A DNA stretch of 64,000 nt from positions 1 through 64,000 of the forward strand of contig JBJFYY010000085.1 in the NCBI GenBank assembly GCA_044892505.1, given 5' to 3'. The translations under genes were made by a program, and so were the position numbers. Under the pieces are notes generated by a model that saw nothing but the letters and a program-made list of their open reading frames with translations, did no database searches and was not told where the DNA came from. Of this stretch, positions 10,608 through 59,894 are shown in pieces (position 1 is the stretch's first letter; each line of letters opens with the position of its first letter). The DNA is from Schmidtea nova (Eukaryota).

Positions 10608-10665
<58 letters not shown>

Positions 10666-21700: not shown

Positions 21701-23278
21701 GAAAAGAAGAATTTACCACAATCAGCCGATAAGGTTTTTATTAAATTCATTTTTATATAATGTAATCATTTATTATAATTAAAATTAATTGTTGTCCTGG
21801 GAAAAAAATTAATTTCAATTAGTTTATAATTATAAATGTAATTTATAATTATTAATATATTGATTATCATAAAATTAATATATCAATTGAATTTTATATA
21901 ATTAATATTACGCTTTTCCAACAATATCATAAATTGTCGAATTCGACAAAATGTAGATGGTGAGGAATTACAAGATTTTAAACAGTCTCCGACTGGTTGG
22001 AAAATATTTCTATTTGATATGTGCGATTTTATCTGTAATAACAAGATTACTAATAACAGACAATGAGTAGGGGTGATGAGTGGATGGTTGCAAAATAATA
22101 TCTCACAAAAAAGTTTCAAAAATGTAAAAGAAACTCCGACAATGGAGTCAGAGATGGATGGGATTATGGGTATTATTTTGTTATGAATTTATGTTCCTTA
22201 AATTAAACAGATTTATTATTAAATATGAAAAAGTTATAAAAATAAAGTTCTCAATTAGCGCTATAATATTCTAGGGGGGAAATTATAATTTTATGTAAAA
22301 TTAATTAATTTTTTTTTGTCACAATCGATAAGGCTTTTATTAAATATAATTTAATCATTATTATATTAATTTTGCCCAGGTGCATTTAATCAATAAAATA
22401 TTAATAATGATGATAAATAATCATTGAAATCTTACCGTAACTCTTGCTGGCAACAAATCAACCTTATTCAATATGAATATCAAATGTTTCTGCTTGCTTC
22501 TAATGTCCGCCTCAATCTTGCTGGATCTCATTCCCATTGGATTCCGCGCATCTAGCACGTAAAGCAGCACATCGGACGAATCAATAACTTTATAGAGTTC
22601 CTTCCAAATCCGATTGGATGTTCCTGCACGGAACACACCATGAGTTGCTTCTGATTTGCTGCCAATGTTGCCTTCGTGTCCTGCTTGCTCTCCATCTACG
22701 CCTTCTGCTGCTGCAGACGCTGCTATTCTAGCGTTATATTCTTCCAGTCCCACTTTTGTTTGTTCTCTCAATTCCTCAAATGTTCTTGCTTTGATATTCA
22801 GCGGATTCATTGGGATTTTACGCTTGAAATATGGCTGCAAATTTGTGAAATTTGGCTTGTTCTTCTTCACTTTTGCTTGATTTAAAGCGAGTGGCATAAC
22901 AGTGCGTCGGAGCTGGATTTGAAATGGGTCAAATGTGTTTTTATATTCTTGGAATTTTAACAAATCTTTTTCGGCAATAACTCTGGTGTTGCCGAACCAC
23001 TTCCGATTCGGTTCTATTCTTGCCATACTACCCGATGGTAATTCCGATTGGAATGGGGCTTCTTTTACAATCTTACCGATAGCATTTCGGCGTTCTTTGG
23101 AGTTTCGATACATTTTCAATCGTTTGATCGTGGCTTTTGAACGCATTTGACCTGATGCATTTTTACGATCTGAATTTTGATTTATTTAATTAGAATGGAA
23201 TATTTTTCATAATGATAAATTACCTTCATTTAGCGAGTGAGTTCCACGATTTATTTTATCAACGATTGGACGACCCAT
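18788..23278 (-). CDS. GNL2: Nucleolar GTP-binding protein 2 (circularly permuted GTPase, NOG2), 622 aa
   Basis: Exons 23278-23224 (ATG, MGRPIVDKINRGTHSLNE), 23169-22436 and 19867-18788; introns of 54 and 2568 nt with GT-AG and consistent phases. NGP1NT-type motifs MRSKATIKRLKMY, RIEPNRKWFGNTRVI, RIWKELYKVIDSSDV; G4 NKVD precedes G1 GFPNTGKSS; GETKVWQY; G3 DCPG. Confidence 0.97.
19900..20580. repeat. AT-rich degenerate minisatellite (ATTGACTAAATTATTAAT-type units)
   Basis: Read directly in GNL2 intron 2; explains the spurious LTKLLII ORF 19831-20307. Confidence 0.9.
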
Positions 23279-42580: not shown

Positions 42581-43037
42581 CTGTTATTGAAATTTGTATA
42601 AATAATATAAGGAGAAACAGTTGTGATTAAATAAAAAAAGAGAGGAAACCAAACCAAAGCAATAGAAAGTTGAAAATGTAAGTAGAAGGATATGTCCGGT
42701 TTAAATCACTAAAAGTTATCGCGCGTTTTTTGATGCCATTTTGAATTTGTGTTTTGATTTATTTTTGGATTTTTGTTTAATTTTTATTTATTATATATTT
42801 TTATTAATCAGTTATTTATTTTTATATATTATTAATTTACTTTTGTCAGTATAATTTATTATTGTTATTTTTGTTTTATGAACGCCTTCAATGATAAATG
42901 TTCAATGAAAACACTCATCAAAATATTATAAACATTCAACAAAATGAGACAATTCTGCACAACATAAAATTACATGGTCAAATACGATAAATATTAAACT
43001 AAATATTTATTACTTATTTTATTATTTATTTTATTAC

Positions 43038-46000
43038 TTATTTTATTTTATTATTATTATTCTTAATCTTTCCATCATTCTTTGGGATGACCAGTGCGTT
43101 GTGGAATGTAAATTTGGATGGAAATAGGTTCGGAAAATCTTGCTTAGATGTAGGATCTTCTACTTTTTCAAAGATTTTCTTTTCATCATTTCTTGGGAAT
43201 TCCAGTGCCTTGTGAAATGTAAATTTGTAAGGAAATGGGTTCGGAAAATCTTGCTTAGATGTAGGATCTTCTACTTTTTCAAAGAATTTCTTTCCATCAT
43301 TCTTTGGGATGACCGGTGCGTTGTGAAATGTAAATTTGAATGGAAATAGGTTCGGAAAATCTTGCTTAGATGTAGGATCTTCTACTTTTTCAAAGATTTT
43401 CTTTTCATCATTTCTTGGGAATTCCAGTGCCTTGTGAAATGTAAATTTGTAAGGAAATGGGTTCGGAAAATCTTGCTTAGATGTAGGATCTTCTACTTTT
43501 TCAAAGATTTTCTTTTCATCATTTCTTGGGAATTCCAGTGCCTTGTGAAATGTAAATTTGTAAGGAAATGGGTTCGGAAAATCTTGCTTAGATGTAGGAT
43601 CTTCTACTTTTTCAAAGATTTTCTTTTCATCATTTCTTGGGAATTCCAGTGCCTTGTGAAATGTAAATTTGTAAGGAAATGGGTTCGGAAAATCTTGCTT
43701 AGATGTAGGATCTTCTACTTTTTCAAAGAATTTCTTTCCATCATTCTTTGGGATGACCGGTGCGTTGTGAAATGTAAATTTGAATGGAAATAGGTTCGGA
43801 AAATCTTGCTTAGATGTAGGATCTTCTACTTTTTCAAAGATTTTCTTTTCATCATTTCTTGGGAATTCCAGTGCCTTGTGAAATGTAAATTTGTAAGGAA
43901 ATGGGTTCGGAAAATCTTGCTTAGATGTAGGATCTTCTACTTTTTCAAAGATTTTCTTTCCATCATTCTTTGGGATGACCGGTGCGTTGTGAAATGTAAA
44001 TTTGTATGGAAATAGAACCAGAAAATCTTGCTTAGATGTAGGATCTTCTACCTTTTCAAAGATTTTCTTTCCATCATTCTTTGGGATGACCGGTGCGTTG
44101 TGGAATGTAAATTTGGATGGAAATAGGTTCGAAAAATCTTGCTTAGATGTAGGATCTTCTACTTTTTCAAAGATTTTCTTTTCGTCATTTCTTGGGAATT
44201 CCAGTGCCTTGTGAAATGTAAATTTGTAAGGAAATGGGTTCGGAAAATCTTGTTTAGATGTAGGATCTTCTACTTTTTCAAAGATTTTCTTTCCATCATT
44301 CTTTGGGATGACCGGTGCGTTGTGGAATGTAAATTTGGATGGAAATAGGTTCGAAAAATCTTGCTTAGATGTAGGATCTTCTACTTTTTCAAAGATTTTC
44401 TTTTCATCATTTCTTGGGAATTCCAGTGCCTTGTGAAATGTAAATTTGTAAGGAAATGGGTTCGGAAAATCTTGCTTAGATGTAGGATCTTCTACTTTTT
44501 CAAAGATTTTCTTTTCATCATTTCTTGGGATGACCGGTGCATTGTGAAATGTAAATTTATAAGGAAATGGGTTCGGAAAATCTTGCTTAGATGTAGGATC
44601 TTCTACTTTTTCAAAGAATTTCTTTCCATCATTCTTTGGGATGACCGGTGCGTTGTGAAATGTAAATTTGAATGGAAATAGGTTCGGAAAATCTTGCTTA
44701 GATGTAGGATCTTCTACTTTTTCAAAGATTTTCTTTTCATCATTTCTTGGGAATTCCAGTGCCTTGTGAAATGTAAATTTGTAAGGAAATGGGTTCGGAA
44801 AATCTTGCTTAGATGTAGGATCTTCTACTTTTTCAAAGATTTTCTTTCCATCATTCTTTGGGATGACCGGTGCGTTGTGGAATGTAAATTTGGATGGAAA
44901 TAGGTTCGAAAAATCTTGCTTAGATGTAGGATCTTCTACTTTTTCAAAGATTTTCTTTTCATCATTTCTTGGGAATTCCAGTGCCTTGTGAAATGTAAAT
45001 TTGTAAGGAAATGGGTTCGGAAAATCTTGCTTAGATGTAGGATCTTCTACTTTTTCAAAGATTTTCTTTTCATCATTTCTTGGGATGACCGGTGCATTGT
45101 GAAATGTAAATTTATAAGGAAATGGGTTCGGAAAATCTTGCTTAGATGTAGGATCTTCTACTTTTTCAAAGAATTTCTTTCCATCATTCTTTGGGATGAC
45201 CGGTGCGTTGTGAAATGTAAATTTGAATGGAAATAGGTTCGGAAAATCTTGCTTAGATGTAGGATCTTCTACTTTTTCAAAGATTTTCTTTTCATCATTT
45301 CTTGGGAATTCCAGTGCCTTGTGAAATGTAAATTTGTAAGGAAATGGGTTCGGAAAATCTTGCTTAGATGTAGGATCTTCTACTTTTTCAAAGATTTTCT
45401 TTCCATCATTCTTTGGGATGACCGGTGCGTTGTGAAATGTAAATTTGTATGGAAATAGAACCAGAAAATCTTGCTTAGATGTAGGATCTTCTACCTTTTC
45501 AAAGATTTTCTTTCCATCATTCTTTGGGATGACCGGTGCGTTGTGGAATGTAAATTTGGATGGAAATAGGTTCGAAAAATCTTGCTTAGATGTAGGATCT
45601 TCTACTTTTTCAAAGATTTTCTTTTCGTCATTTCTTGGGAATTCCAGTGCCTTGTGAAATGTAAATTTGTAAGGAAATGGGTTCGGAAAATCTTGTTTAG
45701 ATGTAGGATCTTCTACTTTTTCAAAGATTTTCTTTCCATCATTCTTTGGCATGACCGGTGCCTTGTGGAATGTAAATTTGGATGGAAATAGGTTCGAAAA
45801 ATCTTGCTTAGATGTAGGATCTTCTACTTTTTCAAAGACTTTCTTTTCATCATTTCTTGGGAATTCCAGTGCCTTGTGAAATGTAAATTTGTAAGGAAAT
45901 GGGTTCGGAAAATCTTGCTTAGATGTAGGATCTTCTACTTTTTCAAAGATTTTCTTTCCATCATTCTTTGGGATGACCGGTGCGTTGTGAAATGTAAATT

Positions 46001-49000
46001 TGTATGGAAATAGAACCGGAAAATCTTGCTTAGATGTAGGATCTTCTACCTTTTCAAAGATTTTCTTTCCATCATTCTTTGGGATGACCGGTGCGTTTTG
46101 GAATGGAAATTTGGATGGAAATAGGTTCGGAAAATCTTGCTTAGATGTAGGATCTACTTTTTCAAAGATTTTCTTTTCATCATTTCTTGGGAATTCCAGT
46201 GCCTTGTGAAATGTAAATTTGTAAGGAAATGGGTTCGGAAAATCTTGCTTAGATGTAGGATCTTCTACTTTTTCAAAGATTTTCTTTCCATCATTCTTTG
46301 GGATGACCGGTGCGTTGTGAAATGTAAATTTGTATGGAAATAGAACCGGAAAATCTTGCTTAGATGTAGGATCTTCTACTTTTTCAAAGATTTTCTTTTC
46401 GTCATTTCTTGGGAATTCCAGTGCCTTGTGAAATGTAAATTTGTAAGGAAATGGGTTCGGAAAATCTTGTTTAGATGTAGGATCTTCTACTTTTTCAAAG
46501 ATTTTCTTTCCATCATTCTTTGGGATGACCGGTGCGTTGTGGAATGTAAATTTGGATGGAAATAGGTTCGAAAAATCTTGCTTAGATGTAGGATCTTCTA
46601 CTTTTTCAAAGATTTTCTTTTCATCATTTCTTGGGAATTCCAGTGCCTTGTGAAATGTAAATTTGTAAGGAAATGGGTTCGGAAAATCTTGCTTAGATGT
46701 AGGATCTTCTACTTTTTCAAAGATTTTCTTTCCATCATTCTTTGGGATGACCGGTGCGTTGTGAAATGTAAATTTGTATGGAAATAGAACCGGAAAATCT
46801 TGCTTAGATGTAGGATCTTCTACCTTTTCAAAGATTTTCTTTCCATCATTCTTTGGGATGACCGGTGCGTTTTGGAATGGAAATTTGGATGGAAATAGGT
46901 TCGGAAAATCTTGCTTAGATGTAGGATCTACTTTTTCAAAGATTTTCTTTTCATCATTTCTTGGGAATTCCAGTGCCTTGTGAAATGTAAATTTGTAAGG
47001 AAATAGGTTCGGAAAATCTTGCTTAGATGTAGGATCTTCTACTTTTTCAAAGATTTTCTTTCCATCATTCTTTGGGATGACCGGTGCGTTGTGAAATGTA
47101 AATTTGTATGGAAATAGAACCGGAAAATCTTGCTTAGATGTAGGATCTTCTACCTTTTCAAAGATTTTCTTTCCATCATTCTTTGGGATGACCGGTGCGT
47201 TGTGGAATGGAAATTTGGATGGAAATAGGTTCGGAAAATCTTGCTTAGATGTAGGATCTTCTACTTTTTCAAAGATTTTCTTTTCATCATTTCTTGGGAA
47301 TTCCAGTGCCTTGTGAAATGTAAATTTGTAAGGAAATGGGTTCGGAAAATCTTGCTTAGATGTAGGATCTTCTACTTTTTCAAAGATTTTCTTTCCATCA
47401 TTCTTTGGGATGACCGGTGCGTTGTGAAATGTAAATTTGTATGGAAATAGAACCGGAAAATCTTGCTTAGATGTAGGATCTTCTACCTTTTCAAAGATTT
47501 TCTTTCCATCATTCTTTGGGATGACCGGTGCGTTGTGGAATGTAAATTTGGATGGAAATAGGTTCGGAAAATCTTGCTTAGATGTAGGATCTTCTACTTT
47601 TTCAAAGATTTTCTTTTCATCATTTCTTGGGAATTCCAGTGCCTTGTGAAATGTAAATTTGTAAGGAAATGGGTTCGGAAAATCTTGCTTAGATGTAGGA
47701 TCTTCTACTTTTTCAAAGATTTTCTTTCCATCATTCTTTGGGATGACCGGTGCGTTGTGGAATGTAAATTTGGATGGAAATAGGTTCGAAAAATCTTGCT
47801 TAGATGTAGGATCTTCTACTTTTTCAAAGATTTTCTTTTCATCATTTCTTGGGAATTCCAGTGCCTTGTGAAATGTAAATTTGTAAGGAAATGGGTTCGG
47901 AAAATCTTGCTTAGATGTAGGATCTTCTACTTTTTCAAAGATTTTCTTTCCATCATTTCTTGGGATGACCGGTGCATTGTGAAATGTAAATTTATAAGGA
48001 AATGGGTTCGGAAAATCTTGCTTAGATGTAGGATCTTCTACTTTTTCAAAGAATTTCTTTCCATCATTCTTTGGGATGACCGGTGCGTTGTGAAATGTAA
48101 ATTTGAATGGAAATAGGTTCGGAAAATCTTGCTTAGATGTAGGATCTTCTACTTTTTCAAAGATTTTCTTTTCATCATTTCTTGGGAATTCCAGTGCCTT
48201 GTGAAATGTAAATTTGTAAGGAAATGGGTTCGGAAAATCTTGCTTAGATGTAGGATCTTCTACTTTTTCAAAGATTTTCTTTCCATCATTCTTTGGGATG
48301 ACCGGTGCGTTGTGAAATGTAAATTTGTATGGAAATAGAACCAGAAAATCTTGCTTAGATGTAGGATCTTCTACCTTTTCAAAGATTTTCTTTCCATCAT
48401 TCTTTGGGATGACCGGTGCGTTGTGGAATGTAAATTTGGATGGAAATAGGTTCGAAAAATCTTGCTTAGATGTAGGATCTTCTACTTTTTCAAAGATTTT
48501 CTTTTCGTCATTTCTTGGGAATTCCAGTGCCTTGTGAAATGTAAATTTGTAAGGAAATGGGTTCGGAAAATCTTGTTTAGATGTAGGATCTTCTACTTTT
48601 TCAAAGATTTTCTTTCCATCATTCTTTGGGATGACCGGTGCGTTGTGGAATGTAAATTTGGATGGAAATAGGTTCGAAAAATCTTGCTTAGATGTAGGAT
48701 CTTCTACTTTTTCAAAGATTTTCTTTTCATCATTTCTTGGGAATTCCAGTGCCTTGTGAAATGTAAATTTGTAAGGAAATGGGTTCGGAAAATCTTGCTT
48801 AGATGTAGGATCTTCTACTTTTTCAAAGATTTTCTTTCCATCATTCTTTGGGATGACCGGTGCGTTGTGAAATGTAAATTTGTATGGAAATAGAACCGGA
48901 AAATCTTGCTTAGATGTAGGATCTTCTACCTTTTCAAAGATTTTCTTTCCATCATTCTTTGGGATGACCGGTGCGTTTTGGAATGGAAATTTGGATGGAA

Positions 49001-52000
49001 ATAGGTTCGGAAAATCTTGCTTAGATGTAGGATCTACTTTTTCAAAGATTTTCTTTTCATCATTTCTTGGGAATTCCAGTGCCTTGTGAAATGTAAATTT
49101 GTAAGGAAATAGGTTCGGAAAATCTTGCTTAGATGTAGGATCTTCTACTTTTTCAAAGATTTTCTTTCCATCATTCTTTGGGATGACCGGTGCGTTGTGA
49201 AATGTAAATTTGTATGGAAATAGAACCGGAAAATCTTGCTTAGATGTAGGATCTTCTACCTTTTCAAAGATTTTCTTTCCATCATTCTTTGGGATGACCG
49301 GTGCGTTGTGGAATGGAAATTTGGATGGAAATAGGTTCGGAAAATCTTGCTTAGATGTAGGATCTTCTACTTTTTCAAAGATTTTCTTTTCATCATTTCT
49401 TGGGAATTCCAGTGCCTTGTGAAATGTAAATTTGTAAGGAAATGGGTTCGGAAAATCTTGCTTAGATGTAGGATCTTCTACTTTTTCAAAGATTTTCTTT
49501 CCATCATTCTTTGGGATGACCGGTGCGTTGTGAAATGTAAATTTGTATGGAAATAGAACCGGAAAATCTTGCTTAGATGTAGGATCTTCTACCTTTTCAA
49601 AGATTTTCTTTCCATCATTCTTTGGGATGACCGGTGCGTTGTGGAATGTAAATTTGGATGGAAATAGGTTCGGAAAATCTTGCTTAGATGTAGGATCTTC
49701 TACTTTTTCAAAGATTTTCTTTTCATCATTTCTTGGGAATTCCAGTGCCTTGTGAAATGTAAATTTGTAAGGAAATGGGTTCGGAAAATCTTGCTTAGAT
49801 GTAGGATCTTCTACTTTTTCAAAGATTTTCTTTTCATCATTTCTTGGGATGACCGGTGCATTGTGAAATGTAAATTTATAAGGAAATGGGTTCGGAAAAT
49901 CTTGCTTAGATGTAGGATCTTCTACTTTTTCAAAGAATTTCTTTCCATCATTCTTTGGGATGACCGGTGCGTTGTGAAATGTAAATTTGAATGGAAATAG
50001 GTTCGGAAAATCTTGCTTAGATGTAGGATCTTCTACTTTTTCAAAGATTTTCTTTTCATCATTTCTTGGGAATTCCAGTGCCTTGTGAAATGTAAATTTG
50101 TAAGGAAATGGGTTCGGAAAATCTTGCTTAGATGTAGGATCTTCTACTTTTTCAAAGATTTTCTTTCCATCATTCTTTGGGATGACCGGTGCGTTGTGAA
50201 ATGTAAATTTGTATGGAAATAGAACCAGAAAATCTTGCTTAGATGTAGGATCTTCTACCTTTTCAAAGATTTTCTTTCCATCATTCTTTGGGATGACCGG
50301 TGCGTTGTGGAATGTAAATTTGTATGGAAATAGAACCGGAAAATCTTGCTTAGATGTAGGATCTTCTACCTTTTCAAAGATTTTCTTTCCATCATTCTTT
50401 GGGATGACCGGTGCGTTGTGGAATGGAAATTTGGATGGAAATAGGTTCGGAAAATCTTGCTTAGATGTAGGATCTACTTTTTCAAAGATTTTCTTTTCAT
50501 CATTTCTTGGGAATTCCAGTGCCTTGTGAAATGTAAATTTGTAAGGAAATAGGTTCGGAAAATCTTGCTTAGATGTAGGATCTTCTACTTTTTCAAAGAT
50601 TTTCTTTCCATCATTCTTTGGGATGACCGGTGCGTTGTGAAATGTAAATTTGTATGGAAATAGAACCGGAAAATCTTGCTTAGATGTAGGATCTTCTACC
50701 TTTTCAAAGATTTTCTTTCCATCATTCTTTGGGATGACCGGTGCGTTGTGGAATGGAAATTTGGATGGAAATAGGTTCGGAAAATCTTGCTTAGATGTAG
50801 GATCTTCTACTTTTTCAAAGATTTTCTTTTCATCATTTCTTGGGAATTCCAGTGCCTTGTGAAATGTAAATTTGTAAGGAAATGGGTTCGGAAAATCTTG
50901 CTTAGATGTAGGATCTTCTACTTTTTCAAAGATTTTCTTTCCATCATTCTTTGGGATGACCGGTGCGTTGTGAAATGTAAATTTGTATGGAAATAGAACC
51001 GGAAAATCTTGCTTAGATGTAGGATCTTCTACCTTTTCAAAGATTTTCTTTCCATCATTCTTTGGGATGACCGGTGCGTTGTGGAATGTAAATTTGGATG
51101 GAAATAGGTTCGGAAAATCTTGCTTAGATGTAGGATCTTCTACTTTTTCAAAGATTTTCTTTTCATCATTTCTTGGGAATTCCAGTGCCTTGTGAAATGT
51201 AAATTTGTAAGGAAATGGGTTCGGAAAATCTTGCTTAGATGTAGGATCTTCTACTTTTTCAAAGATTTTCTTTCCATCATTCTTTGGGATGACCGGTGCG
51301 TTGTGAAATGTAAATTTGGATGGAAATAGGTTCGGAAAATCTTGCTTAGATGTAGGATCTACTTTTTCAAAGATTTTCTTTTCATCATTTCTTGGGAATT
51401 CCAGTGCCTTGTGAAATGTAAATTTGTAAGGAAATAGGTTCGGAAAATCTTGCTTAGATGTAGGATCTTCTACTTTTTCAAAGATTTTCTTTTCATCATT
51501 TCTTGGGAATTCCAGTGCCTTGTGAAATGTAAATTTGTAAGGAAATGGGTTCGGAAAATCTTGCTTAGATGTAGGATCTTCTACTTTTTCAAAGATTTTC
51601 TTTCCATCATTCTTTGGGATGACCGGTGCGTTGTGAAATGTAAATTTGTATGGAAATAGAACCGGAAAATCTTGCTTAGATGTAGGATCTTCTACCTTTT
51701 CAAAGATTTTCTTTCCATCATTCTTTGGGATGACCGGTGCGTTGTGGAATGTAAATTTGGATGGAAATAGGTTCGAAAAATGTTGCTTAGATGTAGGATC
51801 TTCTACTTTTTCAAAGATTTTCTTTTCGTCATTTCTTGGGAATTCCAGTGCCTTGTGAAATGTAAATTTGTAAGGAAATGGGTTCGGAAAATCTTGTTTA
51901 GATGTAGGATCTTCTACTTTTTCAAAGATTTTCTTTCCATCATTCTTTGGGATGACCGGTGCGTTGTGGAATGTAAATTTGGATGGAAATAGGTTCGGAA

Positions 52001-53963
52001 AATCTTGCTTAGATGTAGGATCTTCTACTTTTTCAAAGATTTTCTTTTCATCATTTCTTGGGAATTCCAGTGCCTTGTGAAATGTAAATTTGTAAGGAAA
52101 TGGGTTCGGAAAATCTTGCTTAGATGTAGGATCTTCTACTTTTTCAAAGATTTTCTTTCCATCATTCTTTGGGATGACCGGTGCGTTGTGAAATGTAAAT
52201 TTGTATGGAAATAGAACCGGAAAATCTTGCTTAGATGTAGGATCTTCTACCTTTTCAAAGATTTTCTTTCCATCATTCTTTGGGATGACCGGTGCGTTGT
52301 GGAATGTAAATTTGGATGGAAATAGGTTCGGAAAATCTTGCTTAGATGTAGGATCTACTTTTTCAAAGATTTTCTTTTCATCATTTCTTGGGAATTCCAG
52401 TGCCTTGTGAAATGTAAATTTGTAAGGAAATAGGTTCGGAAAATCTTGCTTAGATGTAGGATCTTCTACTTTTTCAAAGATTTTCTTTCCATCATTCTTT
52501 GGGATGACCGGTGCGTTGTGGAATGTAAATTTGGATGGAAATAGGTTCGGAAAATCTTGCTTAGATGTAGGATCTTCTACTTTTTCAAAGATTTTCTTTT
52601 CATCATTTCTTGGGAATTCCAGTGCCTTGTGAAATGTAAATTTGTAAGGAAATGGGTTCGGAAAATCTTGCTTAGATGTAGGATCTTCTACTTTTTCAAA
52701 GATTTTCTTTCCATCATTCTTTGGGATGACCGGTGCGTTGTGGAATGTAAATTTGGATGGAAATAGGTTCGGAAAATCTTGCTTAGATGTAGGATCTACT
52801 TTTTCAAAGATTTTCTTTTCATCATTTCTTGGGAATTCCAGTGCCTTGTGAAATGTAAATTTGTAAGGAAATAGGTTCGGAAAATCTTGCTTAGCTGTAG
52901 GATCTTCTACTTTTTCAAAGATTTTCTTTTCATCATTTCTTGGGAATTCCAGTGCCTTGTGAAATGTAAATTTGTAAGGAAATGGGTTCGGAAAATCTTG
53001 CTTAGATGTAGGATCTTCTACTTTTTCAAAGATTTTCTTTCCATCATTCTTTGGGATGACCGGTGCGTTGTGAAATGTAAATTTGTATGGAAATAGAACC
53101 GGAAAATCTTGCTTAGATGTAGGATCTTCTACCTTTTCAAAGATTTTCTTTCCATCATTCTTTGGGATGACCGGTGCGTTGTGGAATGGAAATTTGGATG
53201 GAAATAGGTTCGGAAAATCTTGCTTAGATGTAGGATCTACTTTTTCAAAGATTTTCTTTTCATCATTTCTTGGGAATTCCAGTGCCTTGTGAAATGTAAA
53301 TTTGTAAGGAAATAGGTTCGGAAAATCTTGCTTAGATGTAGGATCTTCTACTTTTTCAAAGATTTTCTTTCCATCATTCTTTGGGATGACCGGTGCGTTG
53401 TGAAATGTAAATTTGTATGGAAATAGAACCGGAAAATCTTGCTTAGATGTAGGATCTTCTACCTTTTCAAAGATTTTCTTTCCATCATTCTTTGGGATGA
53501 CCGGTGCGTTGTGGAATGTAAATTTGTATGGATTATTTTCCGGAAAAACTTGCATTGGTGTAGGATCTTCTACTTTTTCAAAGATTTTCTTTTCATCATT
53601 TCTTGGGATTTCCAGTGTCTTCTGAAATGTAAATTTGTATGGATTATTCTCCGGAAAAACTTGCATTGGTGGAGGATCGTCATCTTTTTCAAAGATTTTC
53701 TTTCTATCATTCTTTGGGATTACCGGTGCTTTGTGGAATGGAAATTTGCATGGAAATTTCTCAGGAAGACCTTGCATTGGCGAGGGATATTTTATGTTAT
53801 TAAACCTTTCCTGATCAGAGTCTTTGGTAACAGAAGACATACTGAAATTTGCTTTACTGAATTGAAATTTATTTAACTTTTCTGTCTGATGAAAATTGAA
53901 TTTATTGCTGTTTGTTGAGAGGCTGGTTATATTTGTTTTGCAAGTTTGATACATGGTTTCCAA
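43038..53963 (-). CDS. Giant intronless 37-aa tandem-repeat protein (~3640 aa), unknown function
   Basis: Open frame of 10.9 kb; first ATG at 53954 (MYQTCK). About 60 unique residues, then about 97 units of 111 bp (some 108 bp), consensus KVEDPTSKQDFPN(P/L)FP(Y/S)KFTFH(NAPVIPKNDG/KALEFPRNDE)KKIFE. No signal peptide. Expression unknown. Confidence 0.7.
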   Translation of the reverse strand: METMYQTCKTNITSLSTNSNKFNFHQTEKLNKFQFSKANFSMSSVTKDSDQERFNNIKYPSPMQGLPEKFPCKFPFHKAPVIPKNDRKKIFEKDDDPPPMQVFPENNPYKFTFQKTLEIPRNDEKKIFEKVEDPTPMQVFPENNPYKFTFHNAPVIPKNDGKKIFEKVEDPTSKQDFPVLFPYKFTFHNAPVIPKNDGKKIFEKVEDPTSKQDFPNLFPYKFTFHKALEFPRNDEKKIFEKVDPTSKQDFPNLFPSKFPFHNAPVIPKNDGKKIFEKVEDPTSKQDFPVLFPYKFTFHNAPVIPKNDGKKIFEKVEDPTSKQDFPNPFPYKFTFHKALEFPRNDEKKIFEKVEDPTAKQDFPNLFPYKFTFHKALEFPRNDEKKIFEKVDPTSKQDFPNLFPSKFTFHNAPVIPKNDGKKIFEKVEDPTSKQDFPNPFPYKFTFHKALEFPRNDEKKIFEKVEDPTSKQDFPNLFPSKFTFHNAPVIPKNDGKKIFEKVEDPTSKQDFPNLFPYKFTFHKALEFPRNDEKKIFEKVDPTSKQDFPNLFPSKFTFHNAPVIPKNDGKKIFEKVEDPTSKQDFPVLFPYKFTFHNAPVIPKNDGKKIFEKVEDPTSKQDFPNPFPYKFTFHKALEFPRNDEKKIFEKVEDPTSKQDFPNLFPSKFTFHNAPVIPKNDGKKIFEKVEDPTSKQDFPNPFPYKFTFHKALEFPRNDEKKIFEKVEDPTSKQHFSNLFPSKFTFHNAPVIPKNDGKKIFEKVEDPTSKQDFPVLFPYKFTFHNAPVIPKNDGKKIFEKVEDPTSKQDFPNPFPYKFTFHKALEFPRNDEKKIFEKVEDPTSKQDFPNLFPYKFTFHKALEFPRNDEKKIFEKVDPTSKQDFPNLFPSKFTFHNAPVIPKNDGKKIFEKVEDPTSKQDFPNPFPYKFTFHKALEFPRNDEKKIFEKVEDPTSKQDFPNLFPSKFTFHNAPVIPKNDGKKIFEKVEDPTSKQDFPVLFPYKFTFHNAPVIPKNDGKKIFEKVEDPTSKQDFPNPFPYKFTFHKALEFPRNDEKKIFEKVEDPTSKQDFPNLFPSKFPFHNAPVIPKNDGKKIFEKVEDPTSKQDFPVLFPYKFTFHNAPVIPKNDGKKIFEKVEDPTSKQDFPNLFPYKFTFHKALEFPRNDEKKIFEKVDPTSKQDFPNLFPSKFPFHNAPVIPKNDGKKIFEKVEDPTSKQDFPVLFPYKFTFHNAPVIPKNDGKKIFEKVEDPTSKQDFLVLFPYKFTFHNAPVIPKNDGKKIFEKVEDPTSKQDFPNPFPYKFTFHKALEFPRNDEKKIFEKVEDPTSKQDFPNLFPFKFTFHNAPVIPKNDGKKFFEKVEDPTSKQDFPNPFPYKFTFHNAPVIPRNDEKKIFEKVEDPTSKQDFPNPFPYKFTFHKALEFPRNDEKKIFEKVEDPTSKQDFPNLFPSKFTFHNAPVIPKNDGKKIFEKVEDPTSKQDFPVLFPYKFTFHNAPVIPKNDGKKIFEKVEDPTSKQDFPNPFPYKFTFHKALEFPRNDEKKIFEKVEDPTSKQDFPNLFPSKFPFHNAPVIPKNDGKKIFEKVEDPTSKQDFPVLFPYKFTFHNAPVIPKNDGKKIFEKVEDPTSKQDFPNLFPYKFTFHKALEFPRNDEKKIFEKVDPTSKQDFPNLFPSKFPFQNAPVIPKNDGKKIFEKVEDPTSKQDFPVLFPYKFTFHNAPVIPKNDGKKIFEKVEDPTSKQDFPNPFPYKFTFHKALEFPRNDEKKIFEKVEDPTSKQDFSNLFPSKFTFHNAPVIPKNDGKKIFEKVEDPTSKQDFPNPFPYKFTFHKALEFPRNDEKKIFEKVEDPTSKQDFSNLFPSKFTFHNAPVIPKNDGKKIFEKVEDPTSKQDFLVLFPYKFTFHNAPVIPKNDGKKIFEKVEDPTSKQDFPNPFPYKFTFHKALEFPRNDEKKIFEKVEDPTSKQDFPNLFPFKFTFHNAPVIPKNDGKKFFEKVEDPTSKQDFPNPFPYKFTFHNAPVIPRNDGKKIFEKVEDPTSKQDFPNPFPYKFTFHKALEFPRNDEKKIFEKVEDPTSKQDFSNLFPSKFTFHNAPVIPKNDGKKIFEKVEDPTSKQDFPNPFPYKFTFHKALEFPRNDEKKIFEKVEDPTSKQDFPNLFPSKFTFHNAPVIPKNDGKKIFEKVEDPTSKQDFPVLFPYKFTFHNAPVIPKNDGKKIFEKVEDPTSKQDFPNPFPYKFTFHKALEFPRNDEKKIFEKVEDPTSKQDFPNLFPSKFPFHNAPVIPKNDGKKIFEKVEDPTSKQDFPVLFPYKFTFHNAPVIPKNDGKKIFEKVEDPTSKQDFPNLFPYKFTFHKALEFPRNDEKKIFEKVDPTSKQDFPNLFPSKFPFQNAPVIPKNDGKKIFEKVEDPTSKQDFPVLFPYKFTFHNAPVIPKNDGKKIFEKVEDPTSKQDFPNPFPYKFTFHKALEFPRNDEKKIFEKVEDPTSKQDFSNLFPSKFTFHNAPVIPKNDGKKIFEKVEDPTSKQDFPNPFPYKFTFHKALEFPRNDEKKIFEKVEDPTSKQDFPVLFPYKFTFHNAPVIPKNDGKKIFEKVEDPTSKQDFPNPFPYKFTFHKALEFPRNDEKKIFEKVDPTSKQDFPNLFPSKFPFQNAPVIPKNDGKKIFEKVEDPTSKQDFPVLFPYKFTFHNAPVIPKNDGKKIFEKVEDPTSKQDFPNPFPYKFTFHKALEFPRNDEKKVFEKVEDPTSKQDFSNLFPSKFTFHKAPVMPKNDGKKIFEKVEDPTSKQDFPNPFPYKFTFHKALEFPRNDEKKIFEKVEDPTSKQDFSNLFPSKFTFHNAPVIPKNDGKKIFEKVEDPTSKQDFLVLFPYKFTFHNAPVIPKNDGKKIFEKVEDPTSKQDFPNPFPYKFTFHKALEFPRNDEKKIFEKVEDPTSKQDFPNLFPFKFTFHNAPVIPKNDGKKFFEKVEDPTSKQDFPNPFPYKFTFHNAPVIPRNDEKKIFEKVEDPTSKQDFPNPFPYKFTFHKALEFPRNDEKKIFEKVEDPTSKQDFSNLFPSKFTFHNAPVIPKNDGKKIFEKVEDPTSKQDFPNPFPYKFTFHKALEFPRNDEKKIFEKVEDPTSKQDFPNLFPFKFTFHNAPVIPKNDGKKFFEKVEDPTSKQDFPNPFPYKFTFHNAPVIPRNDEKKIFEKVEDPTSKQDFPNPFPYKFTFHKALEFPRNDEKKIFEKVEDPTSKQDFSNLFPSKFTFHNAPVIPKNDGKKIFEKVEDPTSKQDFPNPFPYKFTFHKALEFPRNDEKKIFEKVEDPTSKQDFSNLFPSKFTFHNAPVIPKNDGKKIFEKVEDPTSKQDFLVLFPYKFTFHNAPVIPKNDGKKIFEKVEDPTSKQDFPNPFPYKFTFHKALEFPRNDEKKIFEKVEDPTSKQDFPNLFPFKFTFHNAPVIPKNDGKKFFEKVEDPTSKQDFPNPFPYKFTFHKALEFPRNDEKKIFEKVEDPTSKQDFPNPFPYKFTFHKALEFPRNDEKKIFEKVEDPTSKQDFPNPFPYKFTFHKALEFPRNDEKKIFEKVEDPTSKQDFPNLFPFKFTFHNAPVIPKNDGKKFFEKVEDPTSKQDFPNPFPYKFTFHKALEFPRNDEKKIFEKVEDPTSKQDFPNLFPSKFTFHNALVIPKNDGKIKNNNNKIK

Positions 53964-54740
53964 TTCTTTATGATTTGGGTCAGATTAAATATGAACAAAT
54001 TTATTGTATTAAATATTTTGTTTCCTTTTTTATTAAATTGCGTATTTGATTATATATGCGGAAATGCTCTTCACACGGCTTTGAATAAATATCTTCATTA
54101 CTAGATAAGTGGCATCGTAATCCTTTTCTTTGTATTTTTCATCTAGGCCAGGGGTGGACAAACCGCGACCAACACTGGAATATTTTCTGGCCCGTGAGTT
54201 GTAGTGGTCTAGAAAGTTGATATCGAAGATTTTCTCAAAGTATTAAAGGAACATGGTCTGCCTCAAACTTTCACTTTATTCAGTGATATTAGATTTTCAA
54301 CAGTTCATTTTAATGACGAGTTAACTCCAAAAACAATCAAAGGACTAATAATTGAAGCTTCAGAATGGTTTGGAAATCATGTACAGTGAAAATCGAACTT
54401 ATCATGATATAGGTGCTCAATTATCTTAAAATTGAGAAATTCCAAGTCAAAACAATTTGAATAATTTAACAATAAATGTTTTTCTCAAAACTTTATATTT
54501 TTGATAACTTTGTTGTGATATTGGCTGATTTGGCGTTTCTGAATTGTTTGAGTTTAATTTTTAATTTTACTTTAATTTACTTAAAAATATGGTGTTTGTT
54601 TTAATATTTCTTTGAGATTAAATACTTTTTTTCTGAAGTTTAAAAAATTGTTAAAACGTGTTAACATTCGTCATAATAAATGATTTCAAATAGTCGATTA
54701 ATAGTTATTTTTTTCTTTAGTCAAACTGTTTTTAAATTTC

Positions 54741-55260
54741 TTAGTGGATTTAATTCAAAAGCTGATTTAATCCAACATCAAAAAATGACGAGTATATTCA
54801 TTCGGATGATGTAGAATATTTAATGTTATCGATTGATCGTGCAAATTTTGTTGATGATCAGCCTAATGACGATTCACCAAAATCGATTGGTTTTGGTGTA
54901 ACTATCAGTGCTCCACACGTGCATGCAGTAGCACTTGAACAAATTCTGCCTAAGTTGAAGCCGGGTGCTGGAATTCTTGATATTGGTTCAGGTAGCGGAT
55001 GTTTAACTGCTTGTTTTATGAAAAAGCTTGGCAGCCAAGCAGTCGTTGTAGGAATTGATCACATTGAAGAACTTGTTCATAAATCTATTTTGAATATTAA
55101 TTAAATTCCGGAAAATAAAGAACTCGTATATACAGGCCATTTGCATTTAAAAATAGGTGATGGTAGAGAGGGGTATGAAGGTTTATCGCCTTATGATGCA
55201 ATTCATGTTGGAGCCGCATCTGAAATTATTCCTGAAAATTTAGTACGTCAACTGAAGGCA
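54741..55260 (+). pseudogene. PCMT1: Protein-L-isoaspartate O-methyltransferase pseudogene
   Basis: SPKSIGFGVTISAPHVHAVALE, LDIGSGSGCLTACF, VGIDHIEELV, GDGREGY...PYDAIHVGAA...LVRQLK. There is a 1-nt frameshift at ~54779, an in-frame TAA at 55102, and truncation after QLK. Confidence 0.9.
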
Positions 55261-55366
55261 TGCAACATGCTATGGCTGAGAAACCCACGAAATGAGTTTT
55301 ATCACATTTTTACACTATATAATTCTTTCATTATGGCCGTGTTGATATAAATATTCTAAAAAATTA

Positions 55367-55700
55367 ACCGATTCGTTCTTTTTTGAGATAGAAATTGTAA
55401 GCTTGATATTTTTTTACCGGCCATGATAAGAGATAACTTGCTTGACACTTCTAATTATGATCCGAATTACCCTTTTTACAGTGGGAACCTTGATTCTGTC
55501 ATTGGCAAGTTCAAAGACGAGAATAAAGGGCTTAAGTACTAGGAATAGGTGTTTCTTAGACCTAAACTTTATAGCCTTTTAGGTGATGACGAAACTAATA
55601 AAGCTAAGGGGGTAACATTGGAGGGTACTGACATAAAGCATCAGTCTTACCTAGATTGTTTTAATGATAACCAAATATTTTCTGTTCCTCAAACTATATA
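55367..55700 (+). mobile_element. Maverick/Polinton-type protein-primed DNA polymerase B remnant
   Basis: TDSFFFEIE (end of the DTDS motif), LDTSNY, VIGKFKDE, LRPKLYS, KAKGV, IKHQSYLDC; several stops and a frameshift. Confidence 0.75.
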
Positions 55701-56587
55701 AAGAGAAAAACACGAATTTTAAACAGAAGTTTGCGGAGAAGTATTACGGCAAGAATTTGCAACATACGTTTTATGACAGGAAATTATGAGAAATTGATCG
55801 AGATGAGTTTATTGAGAAATTGATTGTTGAAAATTTAGTGGAAGTTGATTATTGAGAATTTTATTAAATAGTTTGTTAAGCCGAATTTCAAGTCAAAGCA
55901 AAGAAAACAAATAGTTGGTTACCCATTATTAAATCAGTGGTTGATGATCGTTAGACAGAGATTATACACCAGTGCTATTCCTCAAATAAGTGTTGTAATA
56001 TGCACTGTATAATTGCCTCAGGTAATTAATTGAGTGTACCAGTGTAATTGTGAAATCAGTTGTGATAACAAAAAAATATCCCTGATGTAATTTCTATTCC
56101 ATTTATTAATAAGTACGCATTCGGAGTCAGAAATTTGATTGGTAATTTTTATACTTCACCAACAATACCAATATTAATTGAGATACAAACATTTGTTTGA
56201 AGTGAAAAATTGAAATATCATGAGATATTATTATTATTATTATTATTATCGTGTTAACTATTATTCTTATATTTAAACTTAGATATTATAATAAGAATGT
56301 TTATACCAACACGGCCATAATGAAAGAATTATATAGTGAAAATGTGATAAAACTCACGGGCCAGAAAATATTCCAGTGTTGGTCGCGGTTTGGCCACCCC
56401 TGGCCTAGATGAAAAATACAATGAAAAGGATTACGATGCCACTTATCTAGAAATGAAGATATTTATTCAAAGCCGTGTGAAGAGCATTTCCGCAAATATA
56501 ATCAAATACGCAATTTAATAAAAAAGGAAACAAAATATTTAATACAATAAATTTGTTCATATTTAATCTGACCCAAATCATTAAGAA

Positions 56588-59500
56588 TTGGAAACCATGT
56601 ATCAAACTTGCAAAACAAATATAACCAGCCTCTCAACAAACAGCAATAAATTCAATTTTCATCAGACAGAAAAGTTAAGTAAATTTCAATTCAGTAAAGC
56701 AAATATCAGTATGTCTTCTGTTACCAAAGACTCTGATCAGGAAAGGTTTAATAAAATAAAATATCCCTCGCCAATGCAAGGTCTTCCCGAGAAACTCACA
56801 TACAAATTTACAATTCACAAAGCACCAGAATTCCCAAAAAATGATAAAAAGAAATTGTTTCAAAAAGTAGACGATCCTCCACCAATGCAAGTTTTTCCGG
56901 AGAATAACCCATACAAGTTTACACTTCACAACGCACCGGTCATCCCAAAGAATGATGGAAAGAAAATCTTTGAAAAGGTAGAAGATCTTACATCTAAGCA
57001 AGATTTTCCGAACCCATTTCCATACAAATTTCCATTCCACAATGCACCGGTCATCCCAAAGAATGATAAAAAGAAACTCTTTGAAAAAGTAGAAGATCCT
57101 ACATCTAAGCAAGATTTTCCGAACCCATTTCCATACAAATTTACATTTCACAACGCACCGGTCATCACAAAGAATGATGGAAAGAAAATCTTTGAAAAAA
57201 TAGGAGATCCTACACCAATGCAAGTTTTTCCGGAGAATAAATCATACAAATTTACATTTCACAAGGCACCGGTCATCCCAAAGAATGATGGAAAGAAACT
57301 TTTTGAAAAAGTAGAAGATCCTACATCTAAGCAAGATTTTCCGAACCCATTTCCATACAAATTTACATTCCACAATGCACCGGTCATCCCAAAGAATGAT
57401 GGAAAGAAACTCTTTGAAAAAGTAGAAGATCCTACATCTAAGCAAGATTTTCCGGACCTATTTCCATACAAATTTACATTCCACAACGCACCGGTCATCC
57501 CAAAGAATGATGGAAAGAGACTCTTTGAAAAGGTAGATCCTACATCTAAGCAAGAATTTCCGAACCCATTTCCATACAAATTTACATTCCACAACGCATC
57601 GGTCATCCCAAAGAATGATGGAAAGAAACTCTTTGAAAAAGTAGAAGATCCTACATCTAAGCAAGATTTTCCGAACCCATTTCCATACAAATTTACATTC
57701 CACAACGCACCGGTCATCCCAAAGAATGATGGAAAGAAAATCTTTGAAAAAGTAGAAGATCCTACATCTAAGCAAGATTTTCCGCACCTATTTCCATACA
57801 AATTTACATTCCACAACGCACCGGTCATCCCAAAAAATGATGGAAAGAAAATCTTTGAAAAGGTAGGAGATCCTACACCAATGCAAGTTTTTCCGGAGAA
57901 TAAGACATACAAATTTACATTTCACAAGGCACTGGAATTCCCAAGAAATAATGATAAGAAAATCTTTGAAACGGTAGAAGATCCTAAACCTAAGCAAGAA
58001 TTTCCGAACCCATTTCCATACAAATTTACATTCCACAATGCACCGGTCATCCCAAAGAATGATGGAAAGAAACTCTTTGAAAAAGTAGAAGATCCTACAT
58101 CTAAGCAAGATTTTCCGAACCCATTTCCATACAAATTTACATTCCACAAGGCACCGGTCATGCCAAAGAATGATGGAAAGAAACTCTTTGAAAAAGTAGA
58201 AGATCCTACATCTAAGCAAGATTTTCCGAACCCATTTCCATACAAATTTACATTCCACAAGGCACCGGTCATGCCAAAGAATGATGGAAAGAAAATCTTT
58301 GAAAAAGTAGAAGATCCTACATCTAAGCAAGATTTTCCGAACCCATTTCCATACAAATTTACATTCCACAATGCACCGGTCATCCCAAAGAATGATGGAA
58401 AGAAACTCTTTGAAAAAGTAGAAGATCCTATATCTAAGCAAGAATTTCCGAACCCATTTCCATACAAATTTACATTCCACAATGCACCGGTCATCCCAAA
58501 GAATGATGGAAAGAATCTCTTTGAAAAAGTAGAAGATCCTACATCTAAGCAAGATTTTCCGAACCCATTTCCTTACAAATTTACATTCCACAATGCACCG
58601 GTCATCCCAAAGAATGATGGAAAGAAACTATTTGAAAAAGTAGAAGATCCTACATCTAAGCAAGATTTTCCGAACCCATTTCCTTACAAATTTACATTCC
58701 ACAATGCACCGGTCATCCCAAAGAATGATGGAAAGAAACTATTTGAAAAAGTAGAAGATCCTACATCTAAGCAAGATTTTCCGAACCCATTTCCATACAA
58801 ATTTACATTCCACAATGCACCGGTCATCCCAAAGAATGATGGAAAGAAACTCTTTGAAAAAGAAGAAGATCCTACACCTAAGCAAGATTTTCCGAACCCA
58901 TTTCCATACAAATTTACATTCCACAAGGCACCGGTCATCCCAAGAAATAATGATAAGAAAATCTTTGAAAAGGTAGAAGATCCTACACCTAAGCAAGAAT
59001 TTCCGAACCCATTTCCATACAAATTTACATTCCACAATGCACCGGTCATCCCAAAGAATGATGGAAAGAAACTCTTTGAAAAAGTAGAAGATCCTACATC
59101 TAAGCAAGATTTTCCGAACCCATTTCCATACAAATTTACATTCCACAAGGCACCGGTCATGCCAAAGAATGATGGAAAGAAACTCTTTGAAAAAGTAGAA
59201 GATCCTACATCTAAGCAAGATTTTCCGAACCCATTTCCATACAAATTTACATTCCACAAGGCACCGGTCATCCCAAGAAATAATGATAAGAAAATCTTTG
59301 AAAAGGTAGAAGATCCTACATCTAAGCAAGATTTTCCGAACACATTTCCATACAAATTTACATTCCACAATGCACCGGTCATCCCAAAGAATGATGGAAA
59401 GAAACTCTTTGAAAAAGTAGAAGATCCTACATCTAAGCAAGATTTTCCGAACCCATTTCCATACAAATTTACATTCCACAAGGCACCGGTCATGCCAAAG

Positions 59501-59893
59501 AATGATGGAAAGAAAATCTTTGAAAAAGTAGAAGATCCTACATCTAAGCTAGATTTTCCAAACCCATTTCCATACAAATTTACATTCCACAATGCACCGG
59601 TCATCCCAAAGAATGATGGAAAGAAACTCTTTGAAAAAGTAGAAGATCCTACATCTAAGCAAGATTTTCCGAACCCATTTCCATACAAATTTACATTCCA
59701 CAATGCACCGGTCATCCCAAAGAATGATGGAAAGAAAATCTTTGAAAAGGTAGAAGATCCTACATCTAAGCAAGAATTTCCGAACCCATTTCCATACAAA
59801 TTTACATTCCACAATGCACCGGTCATCCCAAAGAATGATGGAAAGAAACTCTTTGAAAAAGTAGAAAATCCTACATCTAAGCAAGAATTCTAA
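56588..59893 (+). CDS. Paralogous 37-aa tandem-repeat protein (~1100 aa), head-to-head with the 43038-53963 copy
   Basis: First ATG at 56597. The unique N-terminus is nearly identical to the left copy, followed by about 28 units dominated by PNPFPYKFTFHNAPVIPKNDGKKLFE; TAA at 59891-59893. Confidence 0.68.
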   Translation: METMYQTCKTNITSLSTNSNKFNFHQTEKLSKFQFSKANISMSSVTKDSDQERFNKIKYPSPMQGLPEKLTYKFTIHKAPEFPKNDKKKLFQKVDDPPPMQVFPENNPYKFTLHNAPVIPKNDGKKIFEKVEDLTSKQDFPNPFPYKFPFHNAPVIPKNDKKKLFEKVEDPTSKQDFPNPFPYKFTFHNAPVITKNDGKKIFEKIGDPTPMQVFPENKSYKFTFHKAPVIPKNDGKKLFEKVEDPTSKQDFPNPFPYKFTFHNAPVIPKNDGKKLFEKVEDPTSKQDFPDLFPYKFTFHNAPVIPKNDGKRLFEKVDPTSKQEFPNPFPYKFTFHNASVIPKNDGKKLFEKVEDPTSKQDFPNPFPYKFTFHNAPVIPKNDGKKIFEKVEDPTSKQDFPHLFPYKFTFHNAPVIPKNDGKKIFEKVGDPTPMQVFPENKTYKFTFHKALEFPRNNDKKIFETVEDPKPKQEFPNPFPYKFTFHNAPVIPKNDGKKLFEKVEDPTSKQDFPNPFPYKFTFHKAPVMPKNDGKKLFEKVEDPTSKQDFPNPFPYKFTFHKAPVMPKNDGKKIFEKVEDPTSKQDFPNPFPYKFTFHNAPVIPKNDGKKLFEKVEDPISKQEFPNPFPYKFTFHNAPVIPKNDGKNLFEKVEDPTSKQDFPNPFPYKFTFHNAPVIPKNDGKKLFEKVEDPTSKQDFPNPFPYKFTFHNAPVIPKNDGKKLFEKVEDPTSKQDFPNPFPYKFTFHNAPVIPKNDGKKLFEKEEDPTPKQDFPNPFPYKFTFHKAPVIPRNNDKKIFEKVEDPTPKQEFPNPFPYKFTFHNAPVIPKNDGKKLFEKVEDPTSKQDFPNPFPYKFTFHKAPVMPKNDGKKLFEKVEDPTSKQDFPNPFPYKFTFHKAPVIPRNNDKKIFEKVEDPTSKQDFPNTFPYKFTFHNAPVIPKNDGKKLFEKVEDPTSKQDFPNPFPYKFTFHKAPVMPKNDGKKIFEKVEDPTSKLDFPNPFPYKFTFHNAPVIPKNDGKKLFEKVEDPTSKQDFPNPFPYKFTFHNAPVIPKNDGKKIFEKVEDPTSKQEFPNPFPYKFTFHNAPVIPKNDGKKLFEKVENPTSKQEF

Positions 59894-59894
59894 T

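Follow-up and report, generated by a model that had tools for sequence, protein, structure and literature searches.

Lineage-specific giant tandem-repeat proteins, whose in-frame arrays of near-identical units are contained in one exon, include the microtubule-associated repetitive proteins of Trypanosoma brucei, which are built from 38-amino-acid (aa) units, and the S100-fused epidermal repeat proteins. Transcripts and products of these genes have been demonstrated, and the proteins usually carry distinct terminal domains. Here, we analysed a stretch of 64,000 nt from Schmidtea nova (GenBank assembly GCA_044892505.1, contig JBJFYY010000085.1, positions 1 to 64,000; hereafter the window), in which positions 43038-59893 hold two divergent open reading frames (ORFs) that largely consist of one tandemly repeated 111-bp unit. 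The locus belongs to a known kind, the lineage-specific tandem-repeat ORF or coding satellite. It resembles the T. brucei and S100-fused repeat proteins in its uninterrupted, near-identical array, in units of approximately 37-38 aa, in signs of unequal crossing-over, in the lack of recognisable domains, and in having no homologues beyond a narrow lineage. In contrast to them, its products are putative, it has no C-terminal domain, and it shows no detectable amino-acid constraint. We read the locus as a young, lineage-restricted protein-coding tandem repeat (‘coding satellite’) that is present as a recent inverted duplicate, and give this reading roughly an even chance. A young orphan repeat protein is just narrowly ahead of an incidentally open satellite, and the evidence for translation is suggestive, not decisive.

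The left (L, minus strand) and right (R, plus strand) ORFs point away from each other (Table 1). An initial annotation of this DNA had described them as sharing an N-terminus of about 60 aa and about 240 bp of upstream sequence, which we confirmed as 63 codons and 249 bp. The reported expansion of a single unit about 97 times in L and about 28 times in R was recovered both by Tandem Repeats Finder (TRF) and by splitting the arrays at the KF.F.H anchor. The tandem period is 111 bp, corresponding to 37 aa, and the consensus unit is composed of the motif blocks YKFTFH, NAPVIPKNDGKK, IFEKVEDP, and TSKQDFPNPFP. With six K, six P, six F/Y, and neither W nor C, it has the composition noted before. 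The N-terminus has no hydrophobic core and thus no signal peptide, again in agreement with the initial annotation. The right ORF carries an in-frame TAA five codons 5′ of its ATG, and a candidate TATA-like A/T-rich stretch was seen by eye approximately 70-85 bp before this ATG. No N runs occur within 43038-59893. In all its descriptive elements, the initial annotation proved correct.

A central question is whether the frame is kept open beyond chance. We consider it possible, with a probability somewhat below even, that the arrays are non-coding satellite DNA with incidental ORFs, in which a unit that happens to lack stops in two of six frames was amplified too recently for mutations to have broken the sense frame, and the array edge was inverted-duplicated together with its flank inside an intron of the neighbouring EHD gene. 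The sense frame contains no stop over 3641 codons in L and 1101 codons in R. As claimed initially, it is free of stops and frameshifts, and other frames of the left array are repeatedly interrupted. All five other frames are in fact broken in both ORFs, with 100, 344, 61, 115, and 346 stops in L and 31, 98, 8, 13, and 112 in R. In favour of an incidental origin, a 37-codon frame at 35% GC is calculated to be open about 6% of the time, and about one-third of such 111-bp units have some open frame. An open consensus is therefore ordinary, and the real test is whether variation avoids breaking the frame. The consensus itself lacks stops in two frames, the sense frame and an antisense frame, of which the latter nevertheless holds 61 + 8 stops across the arrays, a contrast that we count in favour of a coding sequence.

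For this test, we compared the 114 full-length units with the consensus and counted 79 distinct substitutions. These comprise 59 replacements, 20 synonymous changes, and no stop-creating change, compared to 2.6 expected sense-frame stops under a transition/transversion-weighted model and 2.7 under a 12-class spectrum model, figures that rest on few independent events. The proposed comparison of nonsense counts with a neutral model thus gave the right direction, but the stop test alone reached only P = 0.066, a value that we also count in favour of an incidentally open satellite. In the other five frames, the same substitutions create 3, 6, 5, 3, and 2 stops (19 in total vs. ~22 expected; 3.3-4.1, 4.3-5.6, 4.3-5.6, 2.2-3.3, and 3.3-3.5 expected per frame). 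Since these counts lie near expectation, the neutral model is calibrated and the deficit, though weak, is specific to the sense frame, which agrees with the earlier statement that this frame is treated unlike the others and counts against a satellite. The earlier argument from about 125 stop-free variant units has to be reduced: none of the units has a stop, but only 49 distinct DNA units exist among the 114 full-length units of both arrays (29 distinct among the 97 units of L), leaving far fewer independent mutational trials than that argument implies.

Indels are more telling than stops on frame maintenance. The 13.9 kb of arrays contain one or two indel events, both of 3 nt. All 36-aa units (eight in L and one in R) share the identical 3-nt loss that converts VED to VD, and this remained the sole length variant, as annotated initially. 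Among the other arrays of the window, those with 66-81% matches have 3-22% indels according to TRF, but these arrays are of shorter period and more prone to slippage. The absence of any frameshifting indel next to such indel-rich satellites argues against a purely non-coding array. The frame is likewise kept by every block in which multi-nucleotide variants cluster (codons 7-16 and 27-37). The arrays have a GC content of 35% vs. 20-30% in the flanks, and GC is higher at first than at second and third codon positions (GC1 > GC2 and GC3), which we count in favour of a coding sequence.

A further point against a satellite is the 68-codon leader between the ATG and the first clear unit, which is non-repetitive or degenerate, open in both copies, and has the ATG near its start in both. 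Its other five frames contain 2-7 stops, and an open frame is present in about 3% of window segments of this length outside the arrays. The leader resembles the unit more at the protein level (score 41 vs. 23 ± 4.7 for shuffles, maximum 39; z about 3.8) than at the DNA level, where no similarity was detected (score 18 vs. 17.7 ± 2.7). Together, the stop deficit, the indels, and the open, diverged leader with its ACCATG start favour the view that the frame has been maintained.

The unique parts of both copies form inverted arms (53700-54203 and 56348-56851) of 504 nt that are 96% complementary and separated by a 2.1-kb loop. The upstream 249 bp differ at six positions between L and R (2.4%), codons 1-63 differ by three replacements (N28S, F37I, and N53K), and one silent change is located in codon 64. 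Because 55293-55357 matches 56294-56358 in inverted orientation (94%), the palindrome must once have extended to approximately 300 bp before the ATG. A 1.09-kb insertion (54204-55292), around which no clear target-site duplication was seen, later split the left arm. This insertion includes a pseudogene fragment of protein-L-isoaspartate O-methyltransferase (PCMT; 54823-55260; Pfam E-values of 7e-26 and 5e-13), whose frame is interrupted by a stop at 55102-55104. We conclude that the ancestral copy contained a 111-bp array preceded by approximately 300 bp of upstream DNA, the ATG, and a diverged leader derived from the repeat, and that this copy underwent a head-to-head duplication, the unique parts now differing by about 2%. 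The outer shared upstream region (54140-54200 and 56350-56410) includes a relatively GC-rich segment, GGCCAGGGGTGGACAAACCGCGACC, which resembles a dispersed-repeat fragment and could supply promoter activity. In the central spacer, two short ORF fragments (55423-55701, plus strand) resemble a polinton-type DNA polymerase B by eye, with no Pfam match at E-values up to 0.01.

Identity between the two arrays is about 90%, with per-unit minimum L-R distances of 2.7-13.5%, and they have no identical unit type in common. L consists of two main unit types, which are distinguished by clustered changes in codons 7-16. Its units follow a 3-unit higher-order repeat (unit distance of 0.055 at lag 3 vs. 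0.10 at lag 1), and blocks of as many as 11 units reappear unchanged at a spacing of 19 units. Units in R are more heterogeneous than in L. Within the window, no further copies of the unit or the arm were found outside both arrays. These long head-to-tail arrays with higher-order structure and homogenisation are of the satellite type, and they share with higher-order-repeat satellite DNA the identical blocks, the array-specific homogenised variants expected from concerted evolution, the greater divergence of units towards one edge, and the inverted array switch. They differ from satellites in a unit length that is a multiple of three, in the lack of frameshifting indels, and in a sense frame that stays open for 68 codons past the array up to an ATG.

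Several observations weigh against a coding function, and most of them count in favour of a satellite. The ratio of nonsynonymous to synonymous substitution (dN/dS) among the array variants is ~0.8 and indistinguishable from 1 (20 synonymous changes observed vs. 16.5-16.8 expected). The replacements observed are no milder than random single-nucleotide replacements (mean BLOSUM62 score of -0.37 vs. -0.39, P = 0.49), and variants are just slightly enriched at third positions (33 vs. 25 and 21). The codon usage is AT-biased, with a GC3 of 0.32 vs. 0.49 in neighbouring exons and with TTT, GAT, and GAA chosen in 85-99% of cases. Nothing indicates selection on the amino-acid sequence of the repeat ORFs. 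In the leader, all L-R changes in codons 1-63 are replacements, which occur at a rate (1.6%) similar to that in the 249 non-coding bp upstream. Much of L is a very recent block duplication that adds few independent trials. Furthermore, L and R have neither a C-terminal domain nor a stop codon nor a 3′ flank in common, and both ORFs stop exactly at array breakpoints. The left array is broken mid-unit after codon 17 (PKNDGK) and followed by nine codons of AT-rich low-complexity sequence and the stop, whereas the right array is broken mid-unit after codon 32 (KQEF), where it directly adjoins a 29-bp satellite that provides the stop with its first bases. The surroundings, probably intronic, are rich in repeats and pseudogenes, including other satellites and mariner/pogo debris, and no homologue or domain was found in any of the collections listed below. 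The initial conclusion that the locus is a protein gene ‘rather than neutral satellite’ is therefore not established, given the P of about 0.07 in the stop test, the dN/dS value, the random-like replacements, and the missing common 3′ end.

After the duplication, each array evolved independently by unequal exchange of multi-unit blocks; L grew to 97 units on its 3-unit higher-order repeat, and R contains 28 more varied units. Under the favoured reading of a young coding repeat, translation from the ATGs at 53954 (minus strand) and 56597 (plus strand) would yield K/F/P/D/E-rich polypeptides of approximately 3638 and 1098 aa. These are predicted to have no signal peptide, a net charge of about +1 per 37-aa unit, and a largely disordered chain with one short β-strand (KFTFH) per unit. 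Selection would mainly keep the frame open and the bulk composition intact, not individual residues, a pattern that would fit a multivalent intracellular repeat protein of the sticker-and-spacer type. On this reading, the right copy, and possibly both, is 3′-truncated and may be a decaying paralogue. A function as a scaffold, spring, or condensate, as proposed initially, is a reasonable guess drawn from composition.

If translated, this gene would lie on the borderline of satellite and coding DNA and encode up to 3,600 residues without relatives. Such a protein would grow by block duplication, with its frame kept open and its sequence otherwise drifting, and it would already have been duplicated in inverted orientation, making it a tractable case for how new proteins arise from repeat expansion and how little selection may sustain them. 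If untranslated, the locus is a cautionary example, as an 11-kb ORF that is open over 97 units amounts to few independent trials (79 substitutions, P about 0.07). Either way, kilobase-scale inverted arms, probably located in an EHD intron, could yield double-stranded RNA.

The genomic position of the pair bears on this last point. Among the spliced neighbours, we examined GNL2, EHD, and MADD exon by exon. EHD encodes an EH-domain-containing, dynamin-like ATPase, and its exons lie on the minus strand on the far side of L (Table 1). Within 42578-64000, where a run of 727 N (62328-63054) could conceal an exon, we found none for the G-domain of EHD; the inverted repeat pair (17 kb) is thus probably nested within a >21-kb intron of EHD, whose strand is that of L. 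Mariner and pogo debris and several satellites likewise appear to be intronic to EHD. An unlikely but conceivable role of the locus is that of a source of hairpin RNA (hpRNA) and endogenous small interfering RNAs, for example from an EHD pre-mRNA that would span antisense R followed by sense L. This would be compatible with either a coding or a satellite origin. The inverted arms with their 2.1-kb loop are predicted to pair into a double-stranded stem that spans 3 kb or more with ~90% identity, and co-transcription is probable as L has the strand of EHD and no upstream EHD exon is present in the window. Conversely, the copies point apart, so that their own promoters would make no hairpin, and a hairpin source leaves the preserved frame unexplained. 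Young Drosophila hpRNAs are reported to derive from inverted duplicates of young genes and to target the parental genes (PMC10317233, PMC10292708); small interfering RNAs from the present locus might similarly be directed against the repeat gene itself. The Drosophila loci are like ours in being recent inverted duplicates of part of a young repetitive ORF with kilobase-pairing arms; the present copies differ in being arranged head-to-head, each with its own duplicated upstream region, and in that co-transcription is deduced from position.

Two unequally long inverted tandem-repeat arms around a unique loop are also reminiscent of Drosophila FB elements. We nevertheless consider it very improbable that the locus is a foldback-type transposable element with tandem-repeat terminal inverted repeats, or an assembly artefact caused by a palindromic chimeric read. 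For a foldback element, the outer ends are asymmetrical (unit codon 17 in L vs. codon 32 in R), no target-site duplication or flanking direct repeat was seen, the loop contains no transposase, and the window has no other copy of the unit or arm. For an artefact, the arms would not be expected to lack any common unit type, to differ by 2-4% in their unique part, to enclose 2.1 kb of unique sequence, or to carry a private 1.09-kb insertion on one side. The arm differences, the unique loop, and the private insertion together exclude a palindromic assembly artefact.

To place the repeat protein among known families, we searched 1.84 billion representative proteins, Pfam, NCBIfam, PDB, Rfam, and collections of metagenome, viral, and prokaryote contigs. 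The earlier statement that the ORFs belong to no recognisable family is supported, with empty or spurious results in all domain, protein, and contig searches. A word-index search yielded no relatives. The suggested profile search of the unit, run with HMMER against the 1.84 billion representatives, returned four marginal matches (E-values of 7.6e-6 to 9e-4), all of them other, unrelated repeat proteins, which we rejected as relatives. One of the four, from a 977-bp metagenome contig (ENA ERZ15185986), shares the motif FTF..PVIP..DG..IF with our unit at 12 of 20 residues, but was rejected as a probable chance match, since it has a 63-aa (189-bp) unit and no DNA similarity. Among the metagenome, viral, and prokaryote contigs, protein-pattern scans came back empty, as did a search of the metagenome set for exact 23-mers. 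Pfam matches to RodZ_C (6e-22), IpaB_EvcA, SCIMP, TEX13, and others were dismissed because these families are mutually unrelated and no single stretch passes in a whole-protein scan, and the NCBIfam matches were dismissed likewise; such scores arise because many weak per-unit matches are summed. No Rfam families were found at 42000-61000. A literature survey on the unit peptide, 111-bp satellites with ORFs, and 37-aa repeats provided nothing relevant save a lead to cortactin.

The reach of these searches can be judged from a conserved neighbour. The GNL2 exon is 78% identical to an entry found only in UniParc and 83% identical to a Logan contig from SRR33002330, while the best named full-length matches (arachnids and a beetle) are about 40% identical. 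As the nearest database GNL2 is just 78-83% identical, the proteome of the species itself may be absent, and ‘no relatives’, a result from searches that did not extend to eukaryotic genome assemblies, should be read as none outside near kin.

In a search with a six-unit profile, the top PDB match was the cortactin repeats (8p94_I, residues 144-315; E = 0.033, ~3 bits per unit). The cortactin/HS1 repeats (HS1_rep) have the same tandem unit length of 37 aa, and the alignment is gapless and in register at ~18-24% identity with the common pattern K.E...S..D[FY]...F..K[FY]. In contrast to cortactin, our ORFs have no SH3 domain and no acidic N-terminal region, and they contain 97 or 28 copies instead of 6.5. 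Homology is unsupported, as HS1_rep (PF02218) never matches in Pfam scans at E-values up to 1 and 10, and spurious Pfam families reach 1e-8 on the repeat protein; we therefore regard this match as a coincidence of period and composition. The PEVK segment of titin and sticker-and-spacer repeats are alike in their regular P/E/V/K-rich units, predicted coil, and many copies. The present units differ from PEVK in their 15% Phe and their period of 37 instead of ~28 aa, they lack flanking Ig/Fn3 domains, and they form a stand-alone ORF without detected sequence similarity.

The suggested structure prediction was carried out on six units. AlphaFold2 modelling, with an alignment of 19 unit-windows, reached a predicted local distance difference test score (pLDDT) of 47.8 in the best case, the remaining models scoring 24-32. 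This low-confidence model shows one short strand per unit at KFTFH, with coil elsewhere.

NPF is the classical EH-domain-binding motif, and this tripeptide is part of the unit consensus (codons 34-36), with L containing it 35 times and R 21 times, next to an EHD gene. About two-thirds of L units carry NLF or VLF in its place. We regard it as speculative and very improbable that a satellite-born cytosolic protein could act as a highly multivalent EH-domain ligand or sponge and form a co-located receptor-ligand pair with EHD. By chance, NPF would be expected in about 5% of units of such composition, and the link to EHD was noticed post hoc.

Table 1 Features of the inverted tandem-repeat locus and its neighbourhood in the window.
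Feature	Position	Strand	Details
Left ORF	43038-53963	-	3641 codons; first ATG 53954; stop 43038-43040
Left 111-bp array	43067-53757	-	TRF ×96.5, 89% matches, 0% indels, score 16863; 97 units by KF.F.H anchor
Left leader (ATG to first clear unit)	53751-53954	-	68 codons
Left copy of shared upstream sequence	53955-54203		249 bp; candidate promoter and 5′ untranslated region; 6 differences vs. right copy
Segment private to left side	54204-55292	+	1.09 kb; splits palindrome; PCMT pseudogene fragment inside
Outer remnant of left arm	55293-55357		94% inverted match to 56294-56358
Central palindrome spacer	55358-56293		936 bp; short ORF fragments without Pfam match
Right copy of shared upstream sequence	56348-56596		249 bp
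Right ORF	56588-59893	+	1101 codons; first ATG 56597 in ACCATG context
Right 111-bp array	56799-59886	+	TRF ×27.8, 92% matches, score 5120; 28 units, most distinct
AT-rich 29/58-bp satellite	59891-60290		Unrelated; abuts right array
EHD exon (EH-domain-containing, dynamin-like ATPase)	42239-42577	-	DUF5600, 2e-32; AG acceptor near 42578; 460 bp past left ORF stop
EH-domain exon of EHD gene	near 33133 (33000-33250)	-	~10 kb from repeat locus
MADD/DENN exons	700-12734	+	
Nucleolar GTPase GNL2	18788-23146	-	
Mariner-type transposase fragment	37511-38184	+	Transposase_1, 1e-15; broken
Pogo/Tigger-like DDE_1 and HTH fragments	38650-41000	-	All broken
Other tandem array	41363-42261		24/41 bp
Other tandem array	39217-39872		136/157 bp
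Other tandem array	32592-32929		23 bp
Other tandem array	19898-20576		18/21/39 bp; within GNL2 intron
Other tandem array	2395-2476		Perfect 17-mer ×4.8

Overall, the window represents an AT-rich animal genome with exons of MADD/DENN and GNL2 and fragments of mariner and pogo elements. It contains three N runs (1810-2094, 16625-16808, and 62328-63054). Its other tandem arrays are mostly AT-rich and indel-rich, yet the 23-bp array, the 17-bp array, and the 29-bp reading of 59891-60290 show 0% indels.

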